Part shown: positions 34,146 through 47,800 of the stretch, one piece after another
Layout: the number at the start of each line of letters is the position of its first letter
How positions within the stretch are numbered: the stretch's first letter is position 1
Source of the DNA: Oopsacas minuta
Taxonomy: Eukaryota > Animalia > Porifera
Direction of reading: 5' to 3'
Length of the DNA stretch: 64,000 bases
Assembly: GCA_024704765.1 (NCBI GenBank)
Contig: JAKMXF010000365.1
Coordinates: forward strand, 806,001 to 870,000
Translations under genes and position numbers: made by a program
The notes under the pieces: generated by a model
The model's input: only the letters and a program-made list of their open reading frames with translations
What the model was told of the DNA's origin: nothing
Databases searched by the model: none

Positions 34146-34613
34146 TCAAAATTCGTTAATTCCAAAGAATCTTACTAAATGAAATTGTGGAAGTTTGGGT
34201 AGTACCCCAACTAAGAGAGCAATCATATTTACTATTGAATGGTTGATGGCATATTCTGTGTAGAAGCTTGCAAGTATAAATAATATTACAGGTACAACAA
34301 TTAGCATCTTCTTTGTCCAGGTCATCTGTTTGCCTTTGTCAATCTGTTCCCAGTGAGTGCGGAATTTCATCGCACCCTCGTCTACCGATTCAGTGTCAAA
34401 AGGCGCTCCTTTCACAAAGTGGAAAGCTAAATATGAAGAAAATGAGTGTAACGCATTTGTGAGTGTCCATGCTACCGCAGTAGAGAAGAAAGGAATACTC
34501 ATTAGAGAGAAATGGAGAATAGCTATTATCGTGAAGTATGTCAGCCAGAATCCACTGTGATTGATCCAGTAGGCGTTTGGGTTCTTCTGTGAGTGAAGTG
34601 AGCCAATTTGCAT
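34146..34613 (-). CDS. ORMDL: ORM1-like protein (serine palmitoyltransferase regulator), single exon, 155 aa
   Basis: NPNAYWINHSGFWLTY, AWTLTNALH, FHFVKGAPF, THWEQIDKGKQMTWTKKMLIVVPVILFILASFYT, PKLPQFHLVRFFGIN: the full ORMDL signature. Confidence 0.97.
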   Translation of the reverse strand: MQIGSLHSQKNPNAYWINHSGFWLTYFTIIAILHFSLMSIPFFSTAVAWTLTNALHSFSSYLAFHFVKGAPFDTESVDEGAMKFRTHWEQIDKGKQMTWTKKMLIVVPVILFILASFYTEYAINHSIVNMIALLVGVLPKLPQFHLVRFFGINEF

Positions 34614-36432
34614 ATTATGTCAAATAATGCTAAATTGTAAATTAATGAATAAAAATGTTACATAGCTCAAAGTCAGGGTTTATAATTAATTGTATATTAA
34701 AAGGTCATTATCCCTGTACAAGTACATCATTTGAGAGCCAAACCCCTTCATATTCCTCTACTAACAGCACACTATGTCTGAAATATTTCTTGTATAGCAA
34801 TATAGAGTAGAACATTAGTTACACGAACACTATATTCCAAGTAATTCTTACTAATGAGTACATATTTATATACTTTAGCAGTCCCCTTCAATGCTTTTTC
34901 AATTAATTTGATTTTACGTAGGACAATAATACTCGAGTTAAGCAGATAAAGAGTAGAAAATATGATAGTCCACTGTTGTAGTATAACGAGAGTGTCTCTA
35001 CATATTAAACTATTAAACTAGAACAGTGCAAATACACGAGCACTACCCTAAAGGCCTAGACTAATGTTCCATTATACAAAATACATTAATTTATATTTGT
35101 AGCTGTTTGAAATTATATAAACTTTGTAGTGAAATTAGATAGAATTGCTTGTTCAGCAATTTAATATTCGGTACAATTCTTTCATATGAATATGAACAGC
35201 CTAATCAGAAAGATCATTTTATGACGTTCAAGCTGATTTTCTGGTGTAATTATCTTGTAACTAGATACTGTAGGTAGTCACAATGTTGTATTACATTATT
35301 GACGTAAATAGGATCAATTCATTAACACGACTTTCACTAGCTAGAATCCACAACCTGTACATTATTATCTTGCAGTATTACGTTATTAATTACATGTTAG
35401 TTAATATACATCATTGTGATACGTCATATCTCTAATTGTGTCAGTCATTGTATTCCTCGATAACGTTTTCTAATTATTGTGAGTTTATAAAGCACATTAT
35501 TTAAACAGGAAAGTGGCTGCGTTAATATCAGCTATATGTAAGCAAAATAAATAAAAATTGCTTGTATAGTAGCCTCGGCGATTAATAATTCAGCACCCCT
35601 AGGTGAGAGAGGAAATACGACTATTACTGTAAGGTGTACCAGTAGATTATTAACTACTCATAGAATGGGTTATTCAGTGTAGGCGATTATTTGTTATGCA
35701 CAAACACCTATATCTGCTATATTATGCGGAACTTACAAATTGAAATTTTGTAGACAAGTGTGATATATAGGCAAAATTGCGCCCTTATATGGGCTTTCCT
35801 AATTCGCTTGTCTACAAGATTCGAACATAACGGACCATTCTGATACCCTATTCACGGAACGGAACGGACAACTTTTTCTTGATGAAAGTTCGAAAATCAC
35901 AGAATATTGTAGAACAACAATTGTCAAACATTTGTTATGACATTTCACGTCAATGGCAATCAATATGTAAAATTTGCATCCGATATCCACAATATTTGAG
36001 GAATTCCGCCTAGAAACATTCCCTCTCTAGTTTTAGATCTCATTTCCTTTGGGAGGGAGGTAGTTATCCTGCCCGAAAGGTGGTTCATATAATATTCGCG
36101 ATTAGAATGATGAAAAGCTGTTCATGCGGTATTACTAGATATTTTATAGATTTCGCTACGAAATTACAAATTTAATTAATCAATGGATTGACACCAGCAG
36201 ACATGAATGAATTTTAAACTGAACTATTTTCTATTGCTATAATTATTAACAATATGGGTAAATATTGGTGGTTAAAACACGTATTATGACTCAATAGCCA
36301 CCATTGATTACGCTATTAATAGTTCTATTTTAGATGTTACGCATCTATGACTATGACTATGAACATTACAGATTTACGCTATAAATAAATGAGCGCACTG
36401 AATTTGCAAATATTTTACAAAGTTTTCTAACG

Positions 36433-38712
36433 ATGGAGATATCAGAATCTAACTTATATTCAGTCGAAAAAGTGAACTTGGAAGAATCAGGATTGCAAGC
36501 GAAATATCCTTCAGAACCTGTGATGATATTCGAATCAACAAATCCGCTAGATCTTGGTCAGATGTCTGCACTCGCATTTATTGAATGGGTAATTGAGAAT
36601 CCGAAAGGAGTAATCTCTCTGCCAACCGGCAAAACTCCTGAATTCATGATTCGCTGGCTGAGTCACTATAAACGGTATGGATATCCTGGTCATGATAGTA
36701 AGCTGTGTGCATTCCCCAATACTTCTGAGCTTACATTTGTGCAGATGGATGACTTTTTCCCAGAATCTCACAACAGCTTCTATAGGTACATAAAGCAATT
36801 CTATCAACCGCTACTTGAGATTCCTGACGAGAGAATTATGACTATTCCTACTGAGGAATACTCGCATCTCTTCGCTTCAAGTCAGGAATCGTTTCTTAGC
36901 TTAAGGGAAAAATCAGCTGATACTCTAACAGCACTACAGCAGCAGTTGAAATCTGCCTTAGAGGAAATGGATGATAAATGTCACCAGTACGAAGAGAGGA
37001 TCAAATCTCTAGGTGGGATAGGATGTGCCTTCTATGGGATTGGCCCTGACGGACATATTGCATTTAATATGCAGGATTGTAAATGTAATGTTACTCACAT
37101 AACAGAGCTGAATTATCCCAGTGCTGCTACTGCAGCATGCGATTTGGGAGGCATTCAAAATGCTCGCAATAAGTTAGCATGGACTATAGGTACAGACACG
37201 ATAAGTTATGCACTCAAAACAAATCCTAAATCTAGAGCATTCCTCTGTGCAGCTGGACAGAAGAAAGCTGACGTCATAGCTCATACACTGTCCAGTCATG
37301 TGTCTTCCCACTACCCAGCTAGTTGTCTGCATGGATTACCAGGAGCAAGGTACTATCTTACACACAGTGCTGCTACTCAGATAGAATCAAGGAAGGCAGT
37401 ACGTCTGTTAGCTTATGAGAAAGGCATGTTACCTGATAGTGTTATCGATGAGATAGTGTGTCATATAGCCTTACAACACCACACGGAAATACTCAATATT
37501 ACGTCAGAACAGTTGAACTCTACACTAAGTGGTAGTGCTCTCCTGAAGAGAATAGCTAATCCACTAACTACAGTATTAACTTCAGTACACAATAGAATCC
37601 TATCCAAACTATCACTACCTCCCTCTGGTAAAGTTATAGAGGAGAATGGTCCGCATCATGATGACATCATGCTATCTCATGGTACTCTATTAAAGGAGAT
37701 GAGAAACATGGATAATACGTATCACGTGTCCTATGGTACTAGTGGATTCACTGCAGTCAGTAATGAGTATTTGTTTTCTCTGTTAGAAACCGTAGATATG
37801 AAGTTTATAGAAGAATCAGCTGATAGGATATTCGCAGAATCTAAGTATCCTCTTATGGATGTATTCAAGCAAGCATTCATTAACAAACAAGCCGATGAGA
37901 TGGCTCGTATTGAGAAAGAATTAATGCTATTTTCCCTGAAGAAAGTATACAATTTGACATCAATTAAAGAAGTGTTTGAACAGTTACAAATCGTATCAGA
38001 CTATCTACATGCTGCTCCCCCTGGAGCTAAGGATAATGAAGAAGTACAGCTGTTCAAAGGTACCATCAGGGAGTTGGAAGCAGAACGTATGTGGCATCTA
38101 CGAGGTGTACCATTAGAGCATATACAGCACATGAGGCTATCCTTCTACAAAGGTGATTTATTTAATCCACAGCCCTCTGAAACAGATATATTAGCGTTTG
38201 GAGACCACATAGATAATATCCGACCAGATATTCTCACTGTTACATTTGATCCCGAGGGCTCCGGACCTGACACACACTTCAAGAATCTACAAGCTTTTAC
38301 AGAGGGTATTCGTATGTACTCAGAACGTTGGCTAGAAGAGGGATACAACCCAACCATTTGGTGCTATAGGAATGTATGGTTCAAATTCACAGCAGCTGAG
38401 ACTTCTCTCATCATGCCAACAACACGTAGTGACATGCTAGAGAACCATGAAATATTCATGAAGTGTTTCTCAAGCCAAGCACGTGCTGAGTTTCCTGATC
38501 CTGATCATGACGGACCATTCACAGAGAAGTGTATTATCCTACAAGAGCAACAACTACAAGATATAAAGACCTTACTCGGTGCTTCTGTTATAGAAGAACA
38601 TACTAGTGTGAAGTTCCGCAATGCATCAGGACTAGTGTATATTCAACAGCACTCCTTAGAAGAGTATTTAGCTACTGTCGGAGCTACTATCAAGACCAGG
38701 ATAGTACAGTAA
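36433..38712 (+). CDS. Glucosamine-6-phosphate deaminase (NagB) fused to a PIG-L/LmbE-family deacetylase domain, bacterial-type architecture, single exon, 759 aa
   Basis: NagB motifs ISLPTGKTPE, FVQMDDFFP and GIGPDGHIAFN in the N-terminal half; PIG-L-type PHHDDIMLS and DPEGSGPDTHFK, then WCYRNVWFKF, in the C-terminal half. TATAAA at 36380-36385. Confidence 0.88.
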   Translation: MEISESNLYSVEKVNLEESGLQAKYPSEPVMIFESTNPLDLGQMSALAFIEWVIENPKGVISLPTGKTPEFMIRWLSHYKRYGYPGHDSKLCAFPNTSELTFVQMDDFFPESHNSFYRYIKQFYQPLLEIPDERIMTIPTEEYSHLFASSQESFLSLREKSADTLTALQQQLKSALEEMDDKCHQYEERIKSLGGIGCAFYGIGPDGHIAFNMQDCKCNVTHITELNYPSAATAACDLGGIQNARNKLAWTIGTDTISYALKTNPKSRAFLCAAGQKKADVIAHTLSSHVSSHYPASCLHGLPGARYYLTHSAATQIESRKAVRLLAYEKGMLPDSVIDEIVCHIALQHHTEILNITSEQLNSTLSGSALLKRIANPLTTVLTSVHNRILSKLSLPPSGKVIEENGPHHDDIMLSHGTLLKEMRNMDNTYHVSYGTSGFTAVSNEYLFSLLETVDMKFIEESADRIFAESKYPLMDVFKQAFINKQADEMARIEKELMLFSLKKVYNLTSIKEVFEQLQIVSDYLHAAPPGAKDNEEVQLFKGTIRELEAERMWHLRGVPLEHIQHMRLSFYKGDLFNPQPSETDILAFGDHIDNIRPDILTVTFDPEGSGPDTHFKNLQAFTEGIRMYSERWLEEGYNPTIWCYRNVWFKFTAAETSLIMPTTRSDMLENHEIFMKCFSSQARAEFPDPDHDGPFTEKCIILQEQQLQDIKTLLGASVIEEHTSVKFRNASGLVYIQQHSLEEYLATVGATIKTRIVQ

Positions 38713-38897
38713 TAAGCTTAATTATAAGATAGTAGATAAGTATTATAGTTTGTTAATCACCAAAAATGGATAATTACTCTGTATTCTGGTATATATGACT
38801 TTACTCATACAAATAAGATAATTTGATATATTTAAATATTACATAATGAATCAACATAGGTTGTAAGCTGACTGGGTTACCATATCTATAGTACTTC

Positions 38898-41800
38898 TCA
38901 AGGAGATGCTGTCAAATCTTCTAAGATATCTTCATCTTCAATCTGACTCTGTTGCGGAGACAATTGAGGCTCTGCTGATGCTTCAACAGATAAGCCTAGA
39001 GCCTTAGTGATACTCTCCATAGTCTTCTTACTGATATAGTAAGTTAGGATTACTGAAGTATTTCTACTCTTTAGTTCCTCAATTAATGTGTAAGCTTGTT
39101 GATGGTCTCCTATTTGATAGCACATGGTATGTAGAATTGTAGATGCTTAACATCTGGTTCAGTAACGACAATATAAGGTGCAAGTTCAAAAACGGTTAAT
39201 CAACTTAAATGTATTAGCTGATAGAATTCGAACTAACTCAATATGATATGGGTACATATTTTATGGAACTTCATCCTAATAGTTCAGGAAATTACAAAAA
39301 TCTTGTCCCAAATTAATGATTAGATTGGAGAGGATCCATCATAGTAAGAACTAAGAAACACATGTATATTTAATGCAATTTTCGAAAACTACATCTACGT
39401 ATCCTTAGGTTACAGTTATATATTTATTTTTCTAAGATTGAACTGTTATGAATATCCATATACGTACGTAATCCCAATACACAAATTACTTACCTGAAGC
39501 TACATAGTACTCCACCAATAGACCATACACATCTCCTACTTTTATAGCAACATCTATCCTAGGATTTTCTAATAAATCTTTACAACAAGAGACAGCTGCT
39601 TGTTGGTCTGTTTGGAATAATACTCTAGCTTCTAGAAACTTTTCTATCAATGCTATCCTCTCCTTGTATAGAGACACCCTTCCCTCTTGCTCCTGAGGGC
39701 TCATATCCTTAGCCTTGGTGATATACTTTAGAGCCTCGCTAAGGGCTCCTACTGCCTTTTCGTAATTCTGGTAATCATCTATCTCTACCTAAATACACCA
39801 GGATATGTTGTATAGTCATTTGTTTAGATTAGTTGTTACTCACAATACCTACGAAATATGTAAACACATATTCTATAGTAAACCGAAATTTGAAATATCC
39901 ATTAACAAATGTCAATAATTCACTAGTCACATCTACTACATATGATACTTCAATTTTATGCCCGTAACAAAGTATAGAAATACTTCTCAATACGATATAC
40001 ATTCAGTGAAACCTGTTACGAAAGTGTTAGTACACTAAATATAATGGAAATTAGATTCCAGCATTGTATTCAGGCTGATACTATCAGTCATGCTATATAT
40101 AGATTGTCAGTTAATACATAGTTTTAATTAATTTCTGTAATATTATCTAATGAATTCAAATATCCTTACCCTACAGGATGTACGATAAACTGAAATTATC
40201 AAATACCTGTGCACAGTGCTCATAGAACATAGCCAAACTATCAAAAGATTTTCCTTTAGTGTAGAACAGTATTATATGCTTCATAATATTAGCATCTTGT
40301 TTCCAGTCAAGAGACTGCAGATAATTAGCTGCCATAACGTAGATCTCTTTCTGACGACTGACATTTGCGAAGAATATAATCTTATCCATGTCACCAGATT
40401 TGAGAAGAGCTTTCATAGCGTTTCTCTTCTGTCCAGCTTGCGTATACTTCTTAGCAGCTAGATGATAAGACTGCTGTCTCATACAGCTGTCTGCTACACT
40501 CTCTAGTATCTTATTTCTGTTAACAGTTGTATTCGTGTCATTTTGATCAGATTTCTCTAGGGTCATTCTCTCAGCTAACTCCTCTGTGATATACACATTC
40601 TGTTTTAAACACAGCTCCAAAGCTTCTAGGTACTTCCCTCCCATTAGCATCAGATCTACTGCTTTATCGCACCTGCATTACACCAATATTACTACAGATT
40701 AATGTTATTATTGCATTACTTACTGTCCAAATTCAATGAAGAACTCAGCACATCTGTTTATGAGAGTAGGATTAGTATTCTGATCTAAATCTTCTACCAT
40801 CTGTCTGAGGGCCTCGAATTGTTGAGTTTTGAAACATAACTCTATTGCGTGACCCAGATTACCACCCTTGTGGTATAGGATAGCTGCTTTTTCGTGATAG
40901 CCTCGTGACTCAAAGTATCTATAATTAAGCGTGTACAATTATACTATCCTAGATTAACTGACAGGATGTCTGCTTCATGTATGTGATATATATGGTGAAT
41001 CGATTGGGGTAAATAATGAATTAATAATTGAGCTAATACTAAATAGTGTTCCTACATACCGAGCTACCCCGAGCATATCAGCTGGTCTAGCGAGCAGGGC
41101 TAGCGTCATGAGCTCAGCCTCTAATCCTGCATCTTTAGCAATTGCAATAGCATTCCTATAGCTCTTAGCTTTAGTGTAGAAATGCATAGCAAGTTGTGCA
41201 TCTTTAGGTTCATATAACTGAGAAGCGAGATGATAGCATGCTGCCTTGTCTCCACATCTCTCAGCATAAGATCTAGCCTTCTCAAACTGTCCGAAATAGC
41301 AGTACATACGAACCAGGGACACGTGGTCTTGAGCAGCCTCGTAGAATTGCATTGCACTATCCATCTCACCTAAAAACAACCTTTATTTTGTATTTATCCT
41401 CTATTATCAATATATCTAACTTCGATTTAACGAGACTTAATTCGTATACATATTAACGCGTTATAACCTAAACTCTCCAGATACTCTCCCCACCACTTCC
41501 TGAGCGGCCTATCCTTAGAATTGAGAATATAATCAGCCAGTTTATCTTGATCTTCAAATAACATCCTCGGTACTTCATTGTGATGAGTATCTGACTTCTC
41601 GTACTCACTGATAGCACCATTTGTATCTCCAATTGATTCTAAGAATTGAGCATTCTTGAAGTGAGTTCTCTTCAAGTGCATTCTACACATGAACAGAGGT
41701 ATTTACAATTACACATAAGATGGAACAAATAAACATAATTCAGTCATCTAGACGAAATATTCCGAGAACCTAGAGATAATATTTTAAATAAGCACCAACC

Positions 41801-44800: not shown

Positions 44801-47800
44801 TTCTTAAAATATATTACAGTTCTAATCAGGTCTTGTCCCATTTCCTAACATGGTGCTTTTCGGACAATCTAATCTACAAAACCTATGTTTTTTGTTACAA
44901 TAATTAATTCCCAAATGGATACGTTTTATCCGAGTTCTACTGTATTTGTTATCCTAAGCTAGCATAAACATAGAAATTTCATGCAACAAGGCAACATACA
45001 TGTACAACAATGTGGAATGAAAAAATATTTCATGCAACATTGTTGCTAGAAAATAGAAGAAAATCACATCATCTACCTGTTAGATGACTAGATATAGAAA
45101 GCTCATGTGCTGATACTTGGACTACTGCCATCTCCTGATTGTAATGAGTACTCATTACGTGTTGCTTCAAAATATACACAGAAGTTGAGTTGTTAGCAGA
45201 GAGAATATCTCTCTTCTTGCAGAAAGCAACCTCGCTTATACATCCAGTCAGTTGTATGGTAGTAAGTGGTTCCCATGCATCTACATGTAATTGATATGTA
45301 ACAATGATAATATACTGTAGTAACGGTATCCTGAGATTACACCCCACACAGCAGCACAGGCTATTACTAGTTAATTTAATTTACTACCTAAAAAATGTAT
45401 TCACTCAACTATTTAAGTAAGAATTGATGTTATCAATTAGAATAAATAACAAAGGTTATAAAACACGTAAGAGACTGTGGGTGGAATTAGCTCAGAGTAC
45501 AAATAATATATTAGTCAGTTTATCATATTGGGTATGGAAATTATACACCAACTTATTTGTAATATTGTATCTTATCTAATATCGAATAATAAAATTCTGA
45601 GGACTTAGCCACAAACTGAAAGTAGGTACAAATGTGCCAAATTTATTATTAGTACTCATTGATCGTATTTCAATGATTTCACCCGATTGGAGATGTATAA
45701 ATTGAAATTAACTCAGTAAAATTGTAAAACCAAATATAAGTCAAAGTAATGGAAGAATCCGCAAAGACGAAGAACTCTGCAGATTCAGATTCTAGTTTCA
45801 GAAGTCGGTTGAATAAATCAGTTTCCTTCAGCAAAGTATTGCCATCACATGAAAGTGTTGTTCCCAATTCAAAGAGGCAGGGGAGACTACGAGCCGCTAC
45901 AATAAGCGATAAGGAGGATTATTGCTTCAGAGACAACTTACACTCTATACGGAGTTATATCAAAAATAAATTTCAAATACTGAAAGGTAGAATCTCTGAA
46001 TTGGAAGATAAAATGCTAGATTCCCTTGCAGAGATAGAGGGAAAATATTCACAGAAACTTCTGGAGAACAAGGAAGCCATGAATAAAATACAAAATCTCA
46101 AAATTATGATTGACGATGTTCTACAGGATAACAGTCTTCAGATAGGAATCAATAATCTCATCAATGATAAGCTAAAACCTAAATCAAGTCCTTCAGAAAT
46201 ATGTGTTACTCTGCAATGGCCAAGAGGGATGGATACTTTTCTCAACCAGCTTGACGACGCTCTCAAAATAACAAAGCACGATGAAGATACGTCACCTCTT
46301 GATTCACCAAGCCCTGTAGAAGTTGTGAGGGTGCAATCTCTCCAGTCCTTCGGTAGGTTGGGACAGGGTATAGAGGACATGGTATCGCCACGCGCTGTTA
46401 CGATTAGCACGGAGGGGTTAGTCTACTGTAGTGATTGGGAGAACAACACGATTATGTGTTTCTCACCTTCCGGAATGTTAAAGTATTCTTTCACTAATGT
46501 AAAGCATCCATATAGTTTATGCGCACACAATAACAGACTGTATGTAACTGAAGCAAATAACTCTTTCCTTAAGGTTGGGAGGGTAGGAAATCATGCTTGT
46601 GTAAAATCGCTAGATCTGAAAGGTAACCTGTTGAATAAGGTAGGGAAGTATGGGTCAAGTAACGGTCATTTCAAGAGTCCTTCTGGCATAACTGTGTATC
46701 AGCTAGTAGATGGGGAGGATAAAGTGTTTGTGTGTGATACTGATAACAACCGATTACAAATATTCAACTCTGATCTGCAATTCGCTAGATTGTTTCTAGC
46801 TGGAAAAGTAAAACAACCAGATGATGTTAAGGTACAGGAAATGAAGGTATATGTGATGGATAAGAGGAACCCTTGCTTACATATATTCACCTTCCAAGAA
46901 GAGGCTCTAGCTAGTATCATTTCTCAAGGACCAGGCAGAGATTTGGAGTCTAGTTACTTCTTCACGCTAGATAAAAGTGGATGTATTGTGTTAGGAGATC
47001 ATGAAAAACATTGCCTCAAGGTATTCACTCCCAATGGCAAGTTAGCTAGGATAATAGGAAGTCCAAATGCCAAGACAGGAGAGTTCTACTTACCTCTGGG
47101 GATAGCACAGTCTAAAGATGATGATCAGATGGCTGTTGTATCGCTGAGGCAAACTGGGTGTGTACAGCTCTTCAACATAAATCTGAGTTTGTTCTCCTTC
47201 TAACTAAATAGTCTTGTACCCAGCGTTATCTCTCTCTATCTCTTTCTCTCCTCAAGCCCCCGATTGTAATAATTGTATATATTACAATTTTATTATTTTT
47301 TGTTTACATTAACTATATTAGTTAACAAGACTTATTTGTTATTATAATGCTATTATCACGCGCTGTCTTATACAATTATTGGATTTTGGGAGAGATGTGC
47401 TGTATAACCATAAAAATGATGCATCACAATCAGAATACCAATTCTTGTAAGCTATCATACGTATTGGCATAACAAACATATCATAACAGAATGATAATTA
47501 TTAACAAGAGTTGTCTTATTTCATTAATTTCTTTTGTATAATTTTGTTTGTTATAATGACCACAATTATAGATTGCTGGGAAAATTGTATGTAGCCAGTT
47601 ATTAGCAACCTAGGGTAGTGGGTAGAAATCCTTTCTTAAATGCACTATATTAATCATAATAAATTCAGTGGCATGGATTTAGCTACCCTAGGGGTCCGAA
47701 TAAACCGGGGCTACCGCTGATTAATTTCTAGATTTCCTGCACCCCCGCGCTTATTCAACCCCCCCCCCCACCCGTTTATTCGGATCCCTAGAGTAGAGAT

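Follow-up and report, generated by a model that had tools for sequence, protein, structure and literature searches.

Two-domain proteins with a NagB-like N-terminal domain and an LmbE-like C-terminal domain are represented among described systems by the PRK02122 (NF002557) family of Bacteroidota, which is ~650 aa in length. A 2026 paper also lists nagB-PIGL fusions among the prokaryote-to-eukaryote transfers of anaerobic APM ciliates, with a proposed role in digestion of cell-wall amino sugars, feeding glycolysis (PMC13198582). The animal GNPDA enzymes are single-domain proteins, as an earlier note on the DNA described below had said, human GNPDA1 having 289 residues in structure 1ne7. We describe here a NagB-like/LmbE-like fusion from the glass sponge Oopsacas minuta, encoded by a single open reading frame (ORF) within a 64,000-nt stretch of contig JAKMXF010000365.1 (positions 806,001 to 870,000, forward strand; assembly GCA_024704765.1), which we refer to in its entirety as the window and whose coordinates are used throughout. 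The sponge and ciliate proteins are alike as fusions of apparently prokaryotic origin in bacterivorous eukaryotes, a likeness taken from description and not from sequence, and they differ in that the ciliate recipients are protists and not animals. In the literature we found no report of a NagB-PIG-L fusion from sponges or other animals; neither "horizontal" nor "glucosamine" occurs in the text of the genome paper on O. minuta (PMC10280926), and "horizontal gene", "lateral gene" and "glucosamine" are likewise absent from the one on A. vastus. In the aggregate, our studies make a well-supported case for an old bacterium-to-glass-sponge transfer of a two-domain amino-sugar enzyme. We consider it probable that this is a real host gene of glass sponges, obtained by horizontal transfer from bacteria, and that its product likely conducts two central steps of N-acetylglucosamine (GlcNAc) catabolism on one polypeptide.

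Architecture and bacterial relatives of the fusion protein

The ORF at 36433-38712(+) begins with ATG, ends with TAA at 38710-38712 and encodes 759 aa without introns. Its translation contains every motif quoted in the earlier note, that is LPTGKTP (residues 63-69), MDD (105-107), GHIAFN (207-212), PHHDD (407-411) and GPDTH (611-615). We used an AlphaFold2 model built on 32 family members (mean predicted local distance difference test score, or pLDDT, 86.9; predicted template modelling score 0.85) to examine the predicted fold, with the following assignments:

36433..38712, + strand: NagB-like/LmbE-like fusion coding sequence (ORF listing; one copy in the genome; codon use; ratio of nonsynonymous to synonymous substitution, dN/dS)
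36520..37404, + strand: N-terminal NagB/GNPDA-fold domain, residues ~30-324 (structure comparison, Foldseek, profile against PDB)
37405..37626, + strand: helical linker, residues ~325-398, family-specific (secondary structure; pLDDT 89-98)
37627..38676, + strand: C-terminal LmbE/PIG-L-fold de-N-acetylase-like domain, residues ~399-748 (structure comparison; invariant PHHDD and GPDTH)
37765..38112, + strand: helical insertion of ~115 residues in the C domain, ~445-560 (model; peculiar to the family)

Both Pfam matches to the protein fell below their gathering scores (PF01182, 24.1 bits against 27; PF02585, 19.5 bits against 28.2, with the match split by the insertion), so that motifs and structure are the basis for calling the two domains; the TIGR00502 score was 66.6 bits against a curated cut-off of 236.9. 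In structural alignments with VIA-align, the N-domain model matched B. subtilis NagB (2bkv) with a Z score of 26.7 and a root mean square deviation of 1.9 Å over 235/242 residues, E. coli NagB with Z 26.0 and human GNPDA (1ne7) with Z 25.9, and the domain was also detected by Foldseek (E 3e-11) and by a profile against PDB (E 1e-29). The C-domain model aligned best with BshB (6p2t; Z 20.2 over 203/232 residues), followed by BC1534 (2ixd; 19.6), a Pyrococcus diacetylchitobiose deacetylase (8bgo; 19.2), LnmX (19.0), TT1542 (18.0) and MshB (1q74; 15.4), with a Foldseek E value of 6.5e-5 to 5bmo. A sequence search of PDB with this domain yielded nothing better than E 0.73 (PH0499), and its fold was settled only by structure comparison. 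Among solved chains, a few, those of Pyrococcus diacetylchitobiose deacetylases, have aligned ranges that begin within the linker. The motifs, together with structural Z scores of ~20 to 26.7, bear out the NagB plus PIG-L reading given in the earlier note, and the model argues strongly for a two-domain NagB-like and LmbE/PIG-L-like architecture. The sponge protein is without a signal peptide.

We assigned residue equivalences through profile alignment to E. coli NagB and through an alignment, A1, of 5 sponge and 27 bacterial sequences. Of the E. coli NagB residues that we take to serve in catalysis and phosphate binding (Asp72, Asp141, His143, Glu148, Arg172 and Lys208), four have equivalents (D106, D206, H208 and K278 for Asp72, Asp141, His143 and Lys208, respectively) that are invariant in A1, as is the LPTGxTP loop; the other two positions are taken up below. 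In the C domain, H408, D410 and D411 (His-x-Asp-Asp) and D613 and H615 are invariant in all 32 sequences. These residues would fit an intact metal site, matched to the zinc ligands of MshB by motif and not by residue-level superposition. In total, ~130 columns are invariant across A1, including LPTG.TPE, GIGPDGHIA.N, PHHDD and DPE..GPDTH. The sponge protein thus has in common with canonical NagB and animal GNPDA1/2 (PF01182, TIGR00502; 240-290 aa) the fold (Z 26), the LPTGxTP loop and the 4 residues named, whereas those enzymes are single-domain and the fusion lies under the curated cut-offs. With the LmbE/PIG-L enzymes (BshB, MshB, BC1534 and archaeal Dac) its C domain has in common the fold (Z 15-20), His-x-Asp-Asp and the distal Asp/His, but it is distinguished from them by the ~115-residue insertion, by GPDTH instead of HxDH and by its sub-cut-off Pfam score.

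The closest counterparts that we observed constitute an unnamed bacterial family of ~785-aa proteins, with which the sponge protein is collinear over 97-99% of its length at 33-41% identity. The same domains, linker, insertion and invariant columns are present in both, and the sponge protein differs by several short deletions and by its eukaryotic genomic context. On the basis of homology, members have been given the names "glucosamine-6-phosphate deaminase" or "6-phosphogluconolactonase" (for example in metagenome-assembled genomes, or MAGs, of Bacteroidota, Ignavibacteriales and Planctomycetota), and literature text searches found no paper on this NagB-LmbE family. PRK02122, which scored over its cut-off in 22/61 sampled Bacteroidota genomes, is different: its bona fide members score 912-1102 bits, whereas the sponge protein, at 159.5 bits, is well short of the 384-bit cut-off, and PRK02122 proteins are ~110-130 aa shorter and set apart from the ~785-aa family by a branch of ~6 substitutions per site. 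By these sequence measures, the sponge protein is not a PRK02122 member and belongs to the distinct ~785-aa family. The earlier note, in regarding NagB-PIG-L fusions as characteristic of bacteria such as Bacteroidota, was right as to a bacterial-type fusion; we refine this in that the family is not that of Bacteroidota PRK02122 and extends over at least 12 phyla.

A word search with the sponge protein showed identity to fall from 81% (sponges) to 40% (the next match), with ~4,000 clusters of ~785-aa proteins matching; every named cluster was bacterial, query coverage was 95-99% for all listed matches but one, and E values ranged from 1e-130 to 1e-166. An exhaustive phmmer search of 1.84 billion 50%-identity representatives gave 1,073 matches at E <= 0.001. 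The best non-sponge match among them was P0006 (41%). On the three contigs inspected, those of P0006, P0007 and P0008, genes are closely packed as in prokaryotes, consistent with the bacterial affinity that the earlier note had proposed. When each GTDB species was represented by a single genome, a scan confirmed at least 566 stretches of the 600 listed; the best 80 all had identities of 32-35% and represented at least 12 phyla. Among the phyla with family members are Bacteroidota, Ignavibacteriota, Planctomycetota, Verrucomicrobiota, Spirochaetota, Latescibacterota, Calditrichota and Omnitrophota.

Ten short or multi-segment matches with locally higher identity were from unlabelled ENA, Logan or JGI metagenomes and none from EukProt. 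All of the short higher-identity matches (P0208, P0273 and others) were nearer to other metagenomic sequences than to sponges, except P0207, a 216-aa sequence on a 902-bp ENA contig, which matches the sponge proteins at ~50% identity and P0008 at 49% and which we leave unplaced; it could be from a bacterium of the donor lineage or from an unsampled eukaryote. P0207 also has the string GDLFNPQP in common with sponges. Some further features of bacterial loci were seen in passing. An ORF of 805-876 aa, which may represent a tandem paralog, lies directly 5' of the family member and on the same strand in a Planctomycetota MAG (L071:77-2704) and in a Stygiobacter MAG (L084:478-2892). A contig titled Limnohabitans (Pseudomonadota; L079), which is probably mis-binned, carries a family member near-identical to Cyclobacteriaceae sequences (branch 0.014).

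Linkage of the fusion gene to the sponge genome

The fusion gene is single-copy; the contig that carries it measures 1.06 Mb, in an assembly of 61.46 Mb and 365 contigs. We found orthologs, 81-84% identical, on 0.45-1.28-Mb contigs of three separate ENA glass-sponge assemblies (L002, L006 and L007), in all of which the order ORMDL(-)/fusion(+)/IFT140(-) is kept. In four independent assemblies with 75-289x coverage, then, animal neighbours are situated within 1.8 kb and 185 bp of the fusion. A Trinity transcript of Vazella pourtalesii in EukProt, 759 aa in length, falls within the 90% cluster of P0002, which shows transcription of the gene in a genus other than Oopsacas. The proposed transfer is older than the separation of the lineages that led to Oopsacas and Vazella.

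Pairwise Nei-Gojobori dN/dS values among the four genomic orthologs were 0.025-0.076, as expected under purifying selection, with synonymous divergence (dS) ranging from 0.6 to saturation, and the orthologs have diverged in step with the host lineages. The G+C content of third codon positions (GC3) in the fusion is 0.355. Its relative synonymous codon usage correlates with that of pooled host ORFs with an r of 0.77, host genes ranging from 0.46 to 0.83, whereas three bacterial homologs gave 0.17, 0.23 and 0.66. The earlier note had proposed integration between genuine animal genes followed by domestication, and the synteny in three further assemblies, the Vazella transcript, dN/dS of about 0.03-0.08 and the host-like codons agree with that proposal. 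The elements that flank the gene are as follows:

36380..36387, + strand: TATA-like element TATAAATA (read directly; 46-53 nt before the fusion ATG)
34146..34613, - strand: ORMDL, the upstream neighbour, intronless, 155 aa (PF04061, E 9e-48, full-length; same neighbour in L002, L006 and L007)
39489..41690, - strand: IFT140 C-terminal tetratricopeptide-repeat exons (PF24760, E 1e-17; PF24762, E 9e-56, 6e-36 and 2e-26)
38898..39125, - strand: putative IFT140 last exon (ORF assigned by its location and by counterpart ORFs next to the orthologs)
38864..38876, no strand assigned: conserved 13-nt block TAAGCTGAYTGGG (3' intergenic spacer, all four sponge loci)

These neighbours, identified through Pfam, place the gene between ORMDL and IFT140 as the earlier note had it. 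The convergent fusion and IFT140 genes are separated by 185 bp between the fusion stop and the stop of the putative IFT140 last exon; we found no Pfam match to the minus-strand ORF 38898-39125 that represents this exon, so that its identity is positional. The spacer is otherwise diverged among the four loci, and TAAGCTGAYTGGG possibly serves in 3'-end formation of one or the other gene. The canonical polyadenylation signal AATAAA was not found in the 185-bp spacer of the window; in two orthologous loci it is present upstream of the block. On the 5' side, TATAAATA lies where the earlier note had placed a TATA-like element, about 50 nt upstream. TATAAAT followed by G(A/G)GCGC also occurs upstream of all three orthologous genes, and it recurs although synonymous sites between window and orthologs are saturated. 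As a candidate promoter signal the element is weak evidence in a genome so rich in A+T (29-38% GC in the window). The published O. minuta genome has 36% GC, 1.59 introns per gene and a BUSCO score of 91-93% (PMC10280926). AP3M (417 aa, with a full-length Adap_comp_sub match) and ORMDL resemble the fusion in being single ORFs, so the caution of the earlier note about reading much into the lack of introns was well placed. At 45749-47203(+) in the window, inside the span of the IFT140(-) exons, there is also a 484-aa NHL-repeat/SGL-like gene; it has the same place in the three other glass-sponge loci, but was called there on the IFT140 strand, an orientation different from that in the window.

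Phylogenetic position and probable direction of transfer

We constructed trees with FastTree (197 rows) and IQ-TREE (49 rows, LG+C20+F+G4 with posterior mean site frequencies), and their topologies agree. The IQ-TREE analysis unites the 6 sponge sequences in a single clade (100/100). A 100/100 split sets subgroup A apart from the main bacterial group, and the sponges are on the side of subgroup A, as sister to P0006+P0008 (ultrafast bootstrap 90; Shimodaira-Hasegawa-like approximate likelihood ratio test, SH-aLRT, 92), and the characters common to subgroup A and the sponges are AFNMQ, LNYPSAA and the lack of a 9-residue insert. The sponges stay nested when 6 genuine PRK02122 proteins serve as the outgroup (SH-aLRT 95). 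The earlier note had called for a maximum-likelihood phylogeny of this kind, and the outcome is divided: the sponges stand beside the bacterial P0006+P0008 and are nested under the outgroup, but a basal root for them was not statistically rejected. We accordingly make no claim of rooted nesting inside bacteria with this outgroup. Nor do we name a donor, the nearest subgroup having one named genome (a Verrucomicrobia MAG), with sister support of 90/92 and 40% identity. The sequences nearest to the sponge proteins are from uncultured bacteria, one of them Margulisbacteria-like; the P0008 contig encodes a TypA protein 86% identical to that of a Candidatus Margulisiibacteriota MAG, which may be a weak hint of a Margulisbacteria-like neighbourhood of the donor.

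Two other accounts of the origin of the gene were weighed against a bacterium-to-sponge transfer. Contaminating bacterial DNA, or a chimeric assembly join, is what a bacterial-type protein without introns might bring to mind, and the earlier note had named such a join as a result that would overturn its proposal. The same animal genes flank the fusion in all four assemblies at the coverage given above; GC3 and codon use are host-like, and the orthologs diverge along with their hosts and are represented by a transcript in a second genus. We regard this account as already refuted in practice, with next to no probability left to it. The other account, which we judge very improbable, is an ancient eukaryotic or opisthokont gene that descended vertically with near-universal loss, or else a transfer from sponge to bacteria. 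Several of our observations lend it some weight or otherwise count against our preferred reading. The sponge stem is 1.4-1.6 substitutions per site in length, making sister group and donor uncertain, and no bacterial sequence is more than ~40% identical to the sponge proteins. A tree that unites the bacterial members of the family, with the sponges and the outgroup on the opposite side, is worse by only 0.08 log-likelihood units (approximately unbiased test, p 0.485), the PRK02122 branch being so long that the test cannot separate a nested from a basal sponge position. Most database matches carry no taxon name, and the direct transcript support is from Vazella and not from O. minuta. On the other side, bacteria of at least 12 phyla have the family, which makes up thousands of 90% clusters, whereas among labelled eukaryotes of the searched collections, EukProt included, it was seen in glass sponges alone, as far as the taxon labels go; broad presence in opisthokonts, which the earlier note had specified as telling against transfer, was thus not what we observed. 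The sequence characters and indels described above are common to the sponges and one bacterial subgroup only. Vertical descent would demand many independent losses, and sponge-to-bacteria transfer would demand spread over most bacterial phyla. Transfer from bacterium to sponge, a direction that we infer from distribution and not from rooting, appears by far the best reading because thousands of clusters over most bacterial phyla stand against one sponge class.

Putative function and its place in host metabolism

The nearest same-strand ORFs within ~200 bp of bacterial family members (n=67) were scanned against Pfam. We observed that ROK-family sugar kinases were the commonest neighbours (17/67, best E 2e-70), while canonical Glucosamine_iso (NagB) genes accounted for 4/67 and hexokinase and acetate kinase for one gene each; in one spirochaete genome, a canonical NagB gene is situated 6 kb from the fusion. 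The kinase and NagB neighbours point to a phosphorylated (amino) sugar as the probable substrate. The acetate kinase gene, a single case in a Latescibacterota MAG (L044:1854-2996), has 8 bp in common with the start of the family member, an arrangement that fits with a deacetylase that would release acetate.

The sponge genome encodes a clear ortholog of NAGK (E 6e-65 against the human protein), two GH20 hexosaminidases, at least four GH18 genes and a canonical PIG-L. With the nagA model we found nothing better than E 0.03 for NagA/AMDHD2 in this genome, and the nagB model, used for canonical GNPDA, matched the fusion ORF alone; the only other PF01182 gene is that for 6-phosphogluconolactonase (PGLS). 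These results suggest a route in which host NAGK would make GlcNAc-6-phosphate (GlcNAc-6P), the C-terminal LmbE/PIG-L-type, metal-dependent de-N-acetylase would convert it to glucosamine-6-phosphate (GlcN-6P), and the N-terminal NagB-type aldose-ketose isomerase/deaminase would convert that product to fructose-6-phosphate and ammonia, so that one cytosolic polypeptide would stand in for AMDHD2 (NagA) and GNPDA. We favour this route because the two host steps that are apparently missing are the two that the fusion domains would supply. A coupled deacetylase-deaminase role, from GlcNAc-6P to fructose-6-phosphate, is plausible on this basis, with the substrates deduced from homology and context. 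As a reasoned hypothesis, offered tentatively and with the odds somewhat against it, we propose that AMDHD2 and GNPDA were both lost in glass sponges and that the passage from GlcNAc-6P to fructose-6-phosphate runs through one bacterial fusion, a two-for-one xenologous displacement fixed before Oopsacas and Vazella separated. Any link of the fusion to bacterivory is speculation.

A gene of the same bacterial origin might instead have another role, either acting on some other N-acetylated sugar or conjugate (free GlcNAc, chitobiose, derivatives of N-acetylmuramic acid, or a thiol or inositol glycoside as in BshB/MshB) or employing its NagB-like domain as a binding or regulatory module. We think this unlikely on balance but deserving of serious attention, since a number of observations speak for it and to that extent against the route proposed above. 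The position of Glu148 is occupied by Met in sponges and by Val/Met/Ile in bacteria, and that of Arg172 by Cys in sponges and by Thr/Ser/Gly in bacteria, in all A1 members. Since these replacements, by which the fusion departs from canonical NagB and GNPDA, are family-wide, they are no sign of decay in the sponge protein, but deaminase chemistry or phosphate binding may differ from that of NagB. Scores are far under the curated cut-offs of nagB and PRK02122, and the best structural matches of the C domain (BshB, BC1534 and diacetylchitobiose deacetylase) include no enzyme that uses GlcNAc-6P. Many of the closest bacterial relatives (P0007, P0009, P0011, P0012, P0015 and P0017; A1 columns 1-70), among them the nearest subgroup, carry an N-terminal hydrophobic segment, probably a signal peptide or anchor, that is absent from the sponge proteins and from the main bacterial group; in those species, such a segment is not easily reconciled with a sugar phosphate of the cytosol as substrate. 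Fusion-bearing bacterial genomes contained NagA in 2/5 cases and canonical NagB-like genes in 3/5, a small sample, which argues that the fusion is not simply a substitute for them in bacteria; as a test of substitution we set this co-occurrence aside, its outcome being mixed and n=5 too small. With BUSCO at 91-93%, the absence of NagA and GNPDA from the sponge could also reflect gaps in the assembly. Against another role stand the invariance of the equivalents of Asp72, Asp141, His143 and Lys208 and of the LPTGxTP loop, the dominance of ROK sugar kinases as operon partners, which points to a phosphorylated sugar, and the exact correspondence between the steps apparently missing from the host and those of the two domains.

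Bacterium-to-animal transfers with good support are few and often disputed, and for this fusion we observed linkage, a transcript, selection and amelioration, the grounds upon which such cases are judged. The recipient is a non-bilaterian lineage with a compact genome known for missing core metazoan genes. If it is true that the fusion replaces AMDHD2 and GNPDA, a foreign gene can assume a central housekeeping step in an animal, and the glass sponges would provide a clean case of pathway displacement. The finding also draws notice to a large, widespread and uncharacterised bacterial family, labelled "glucosamine-6-phosphate deaminase" by homology only, whose members are without two canonical NagB residues.

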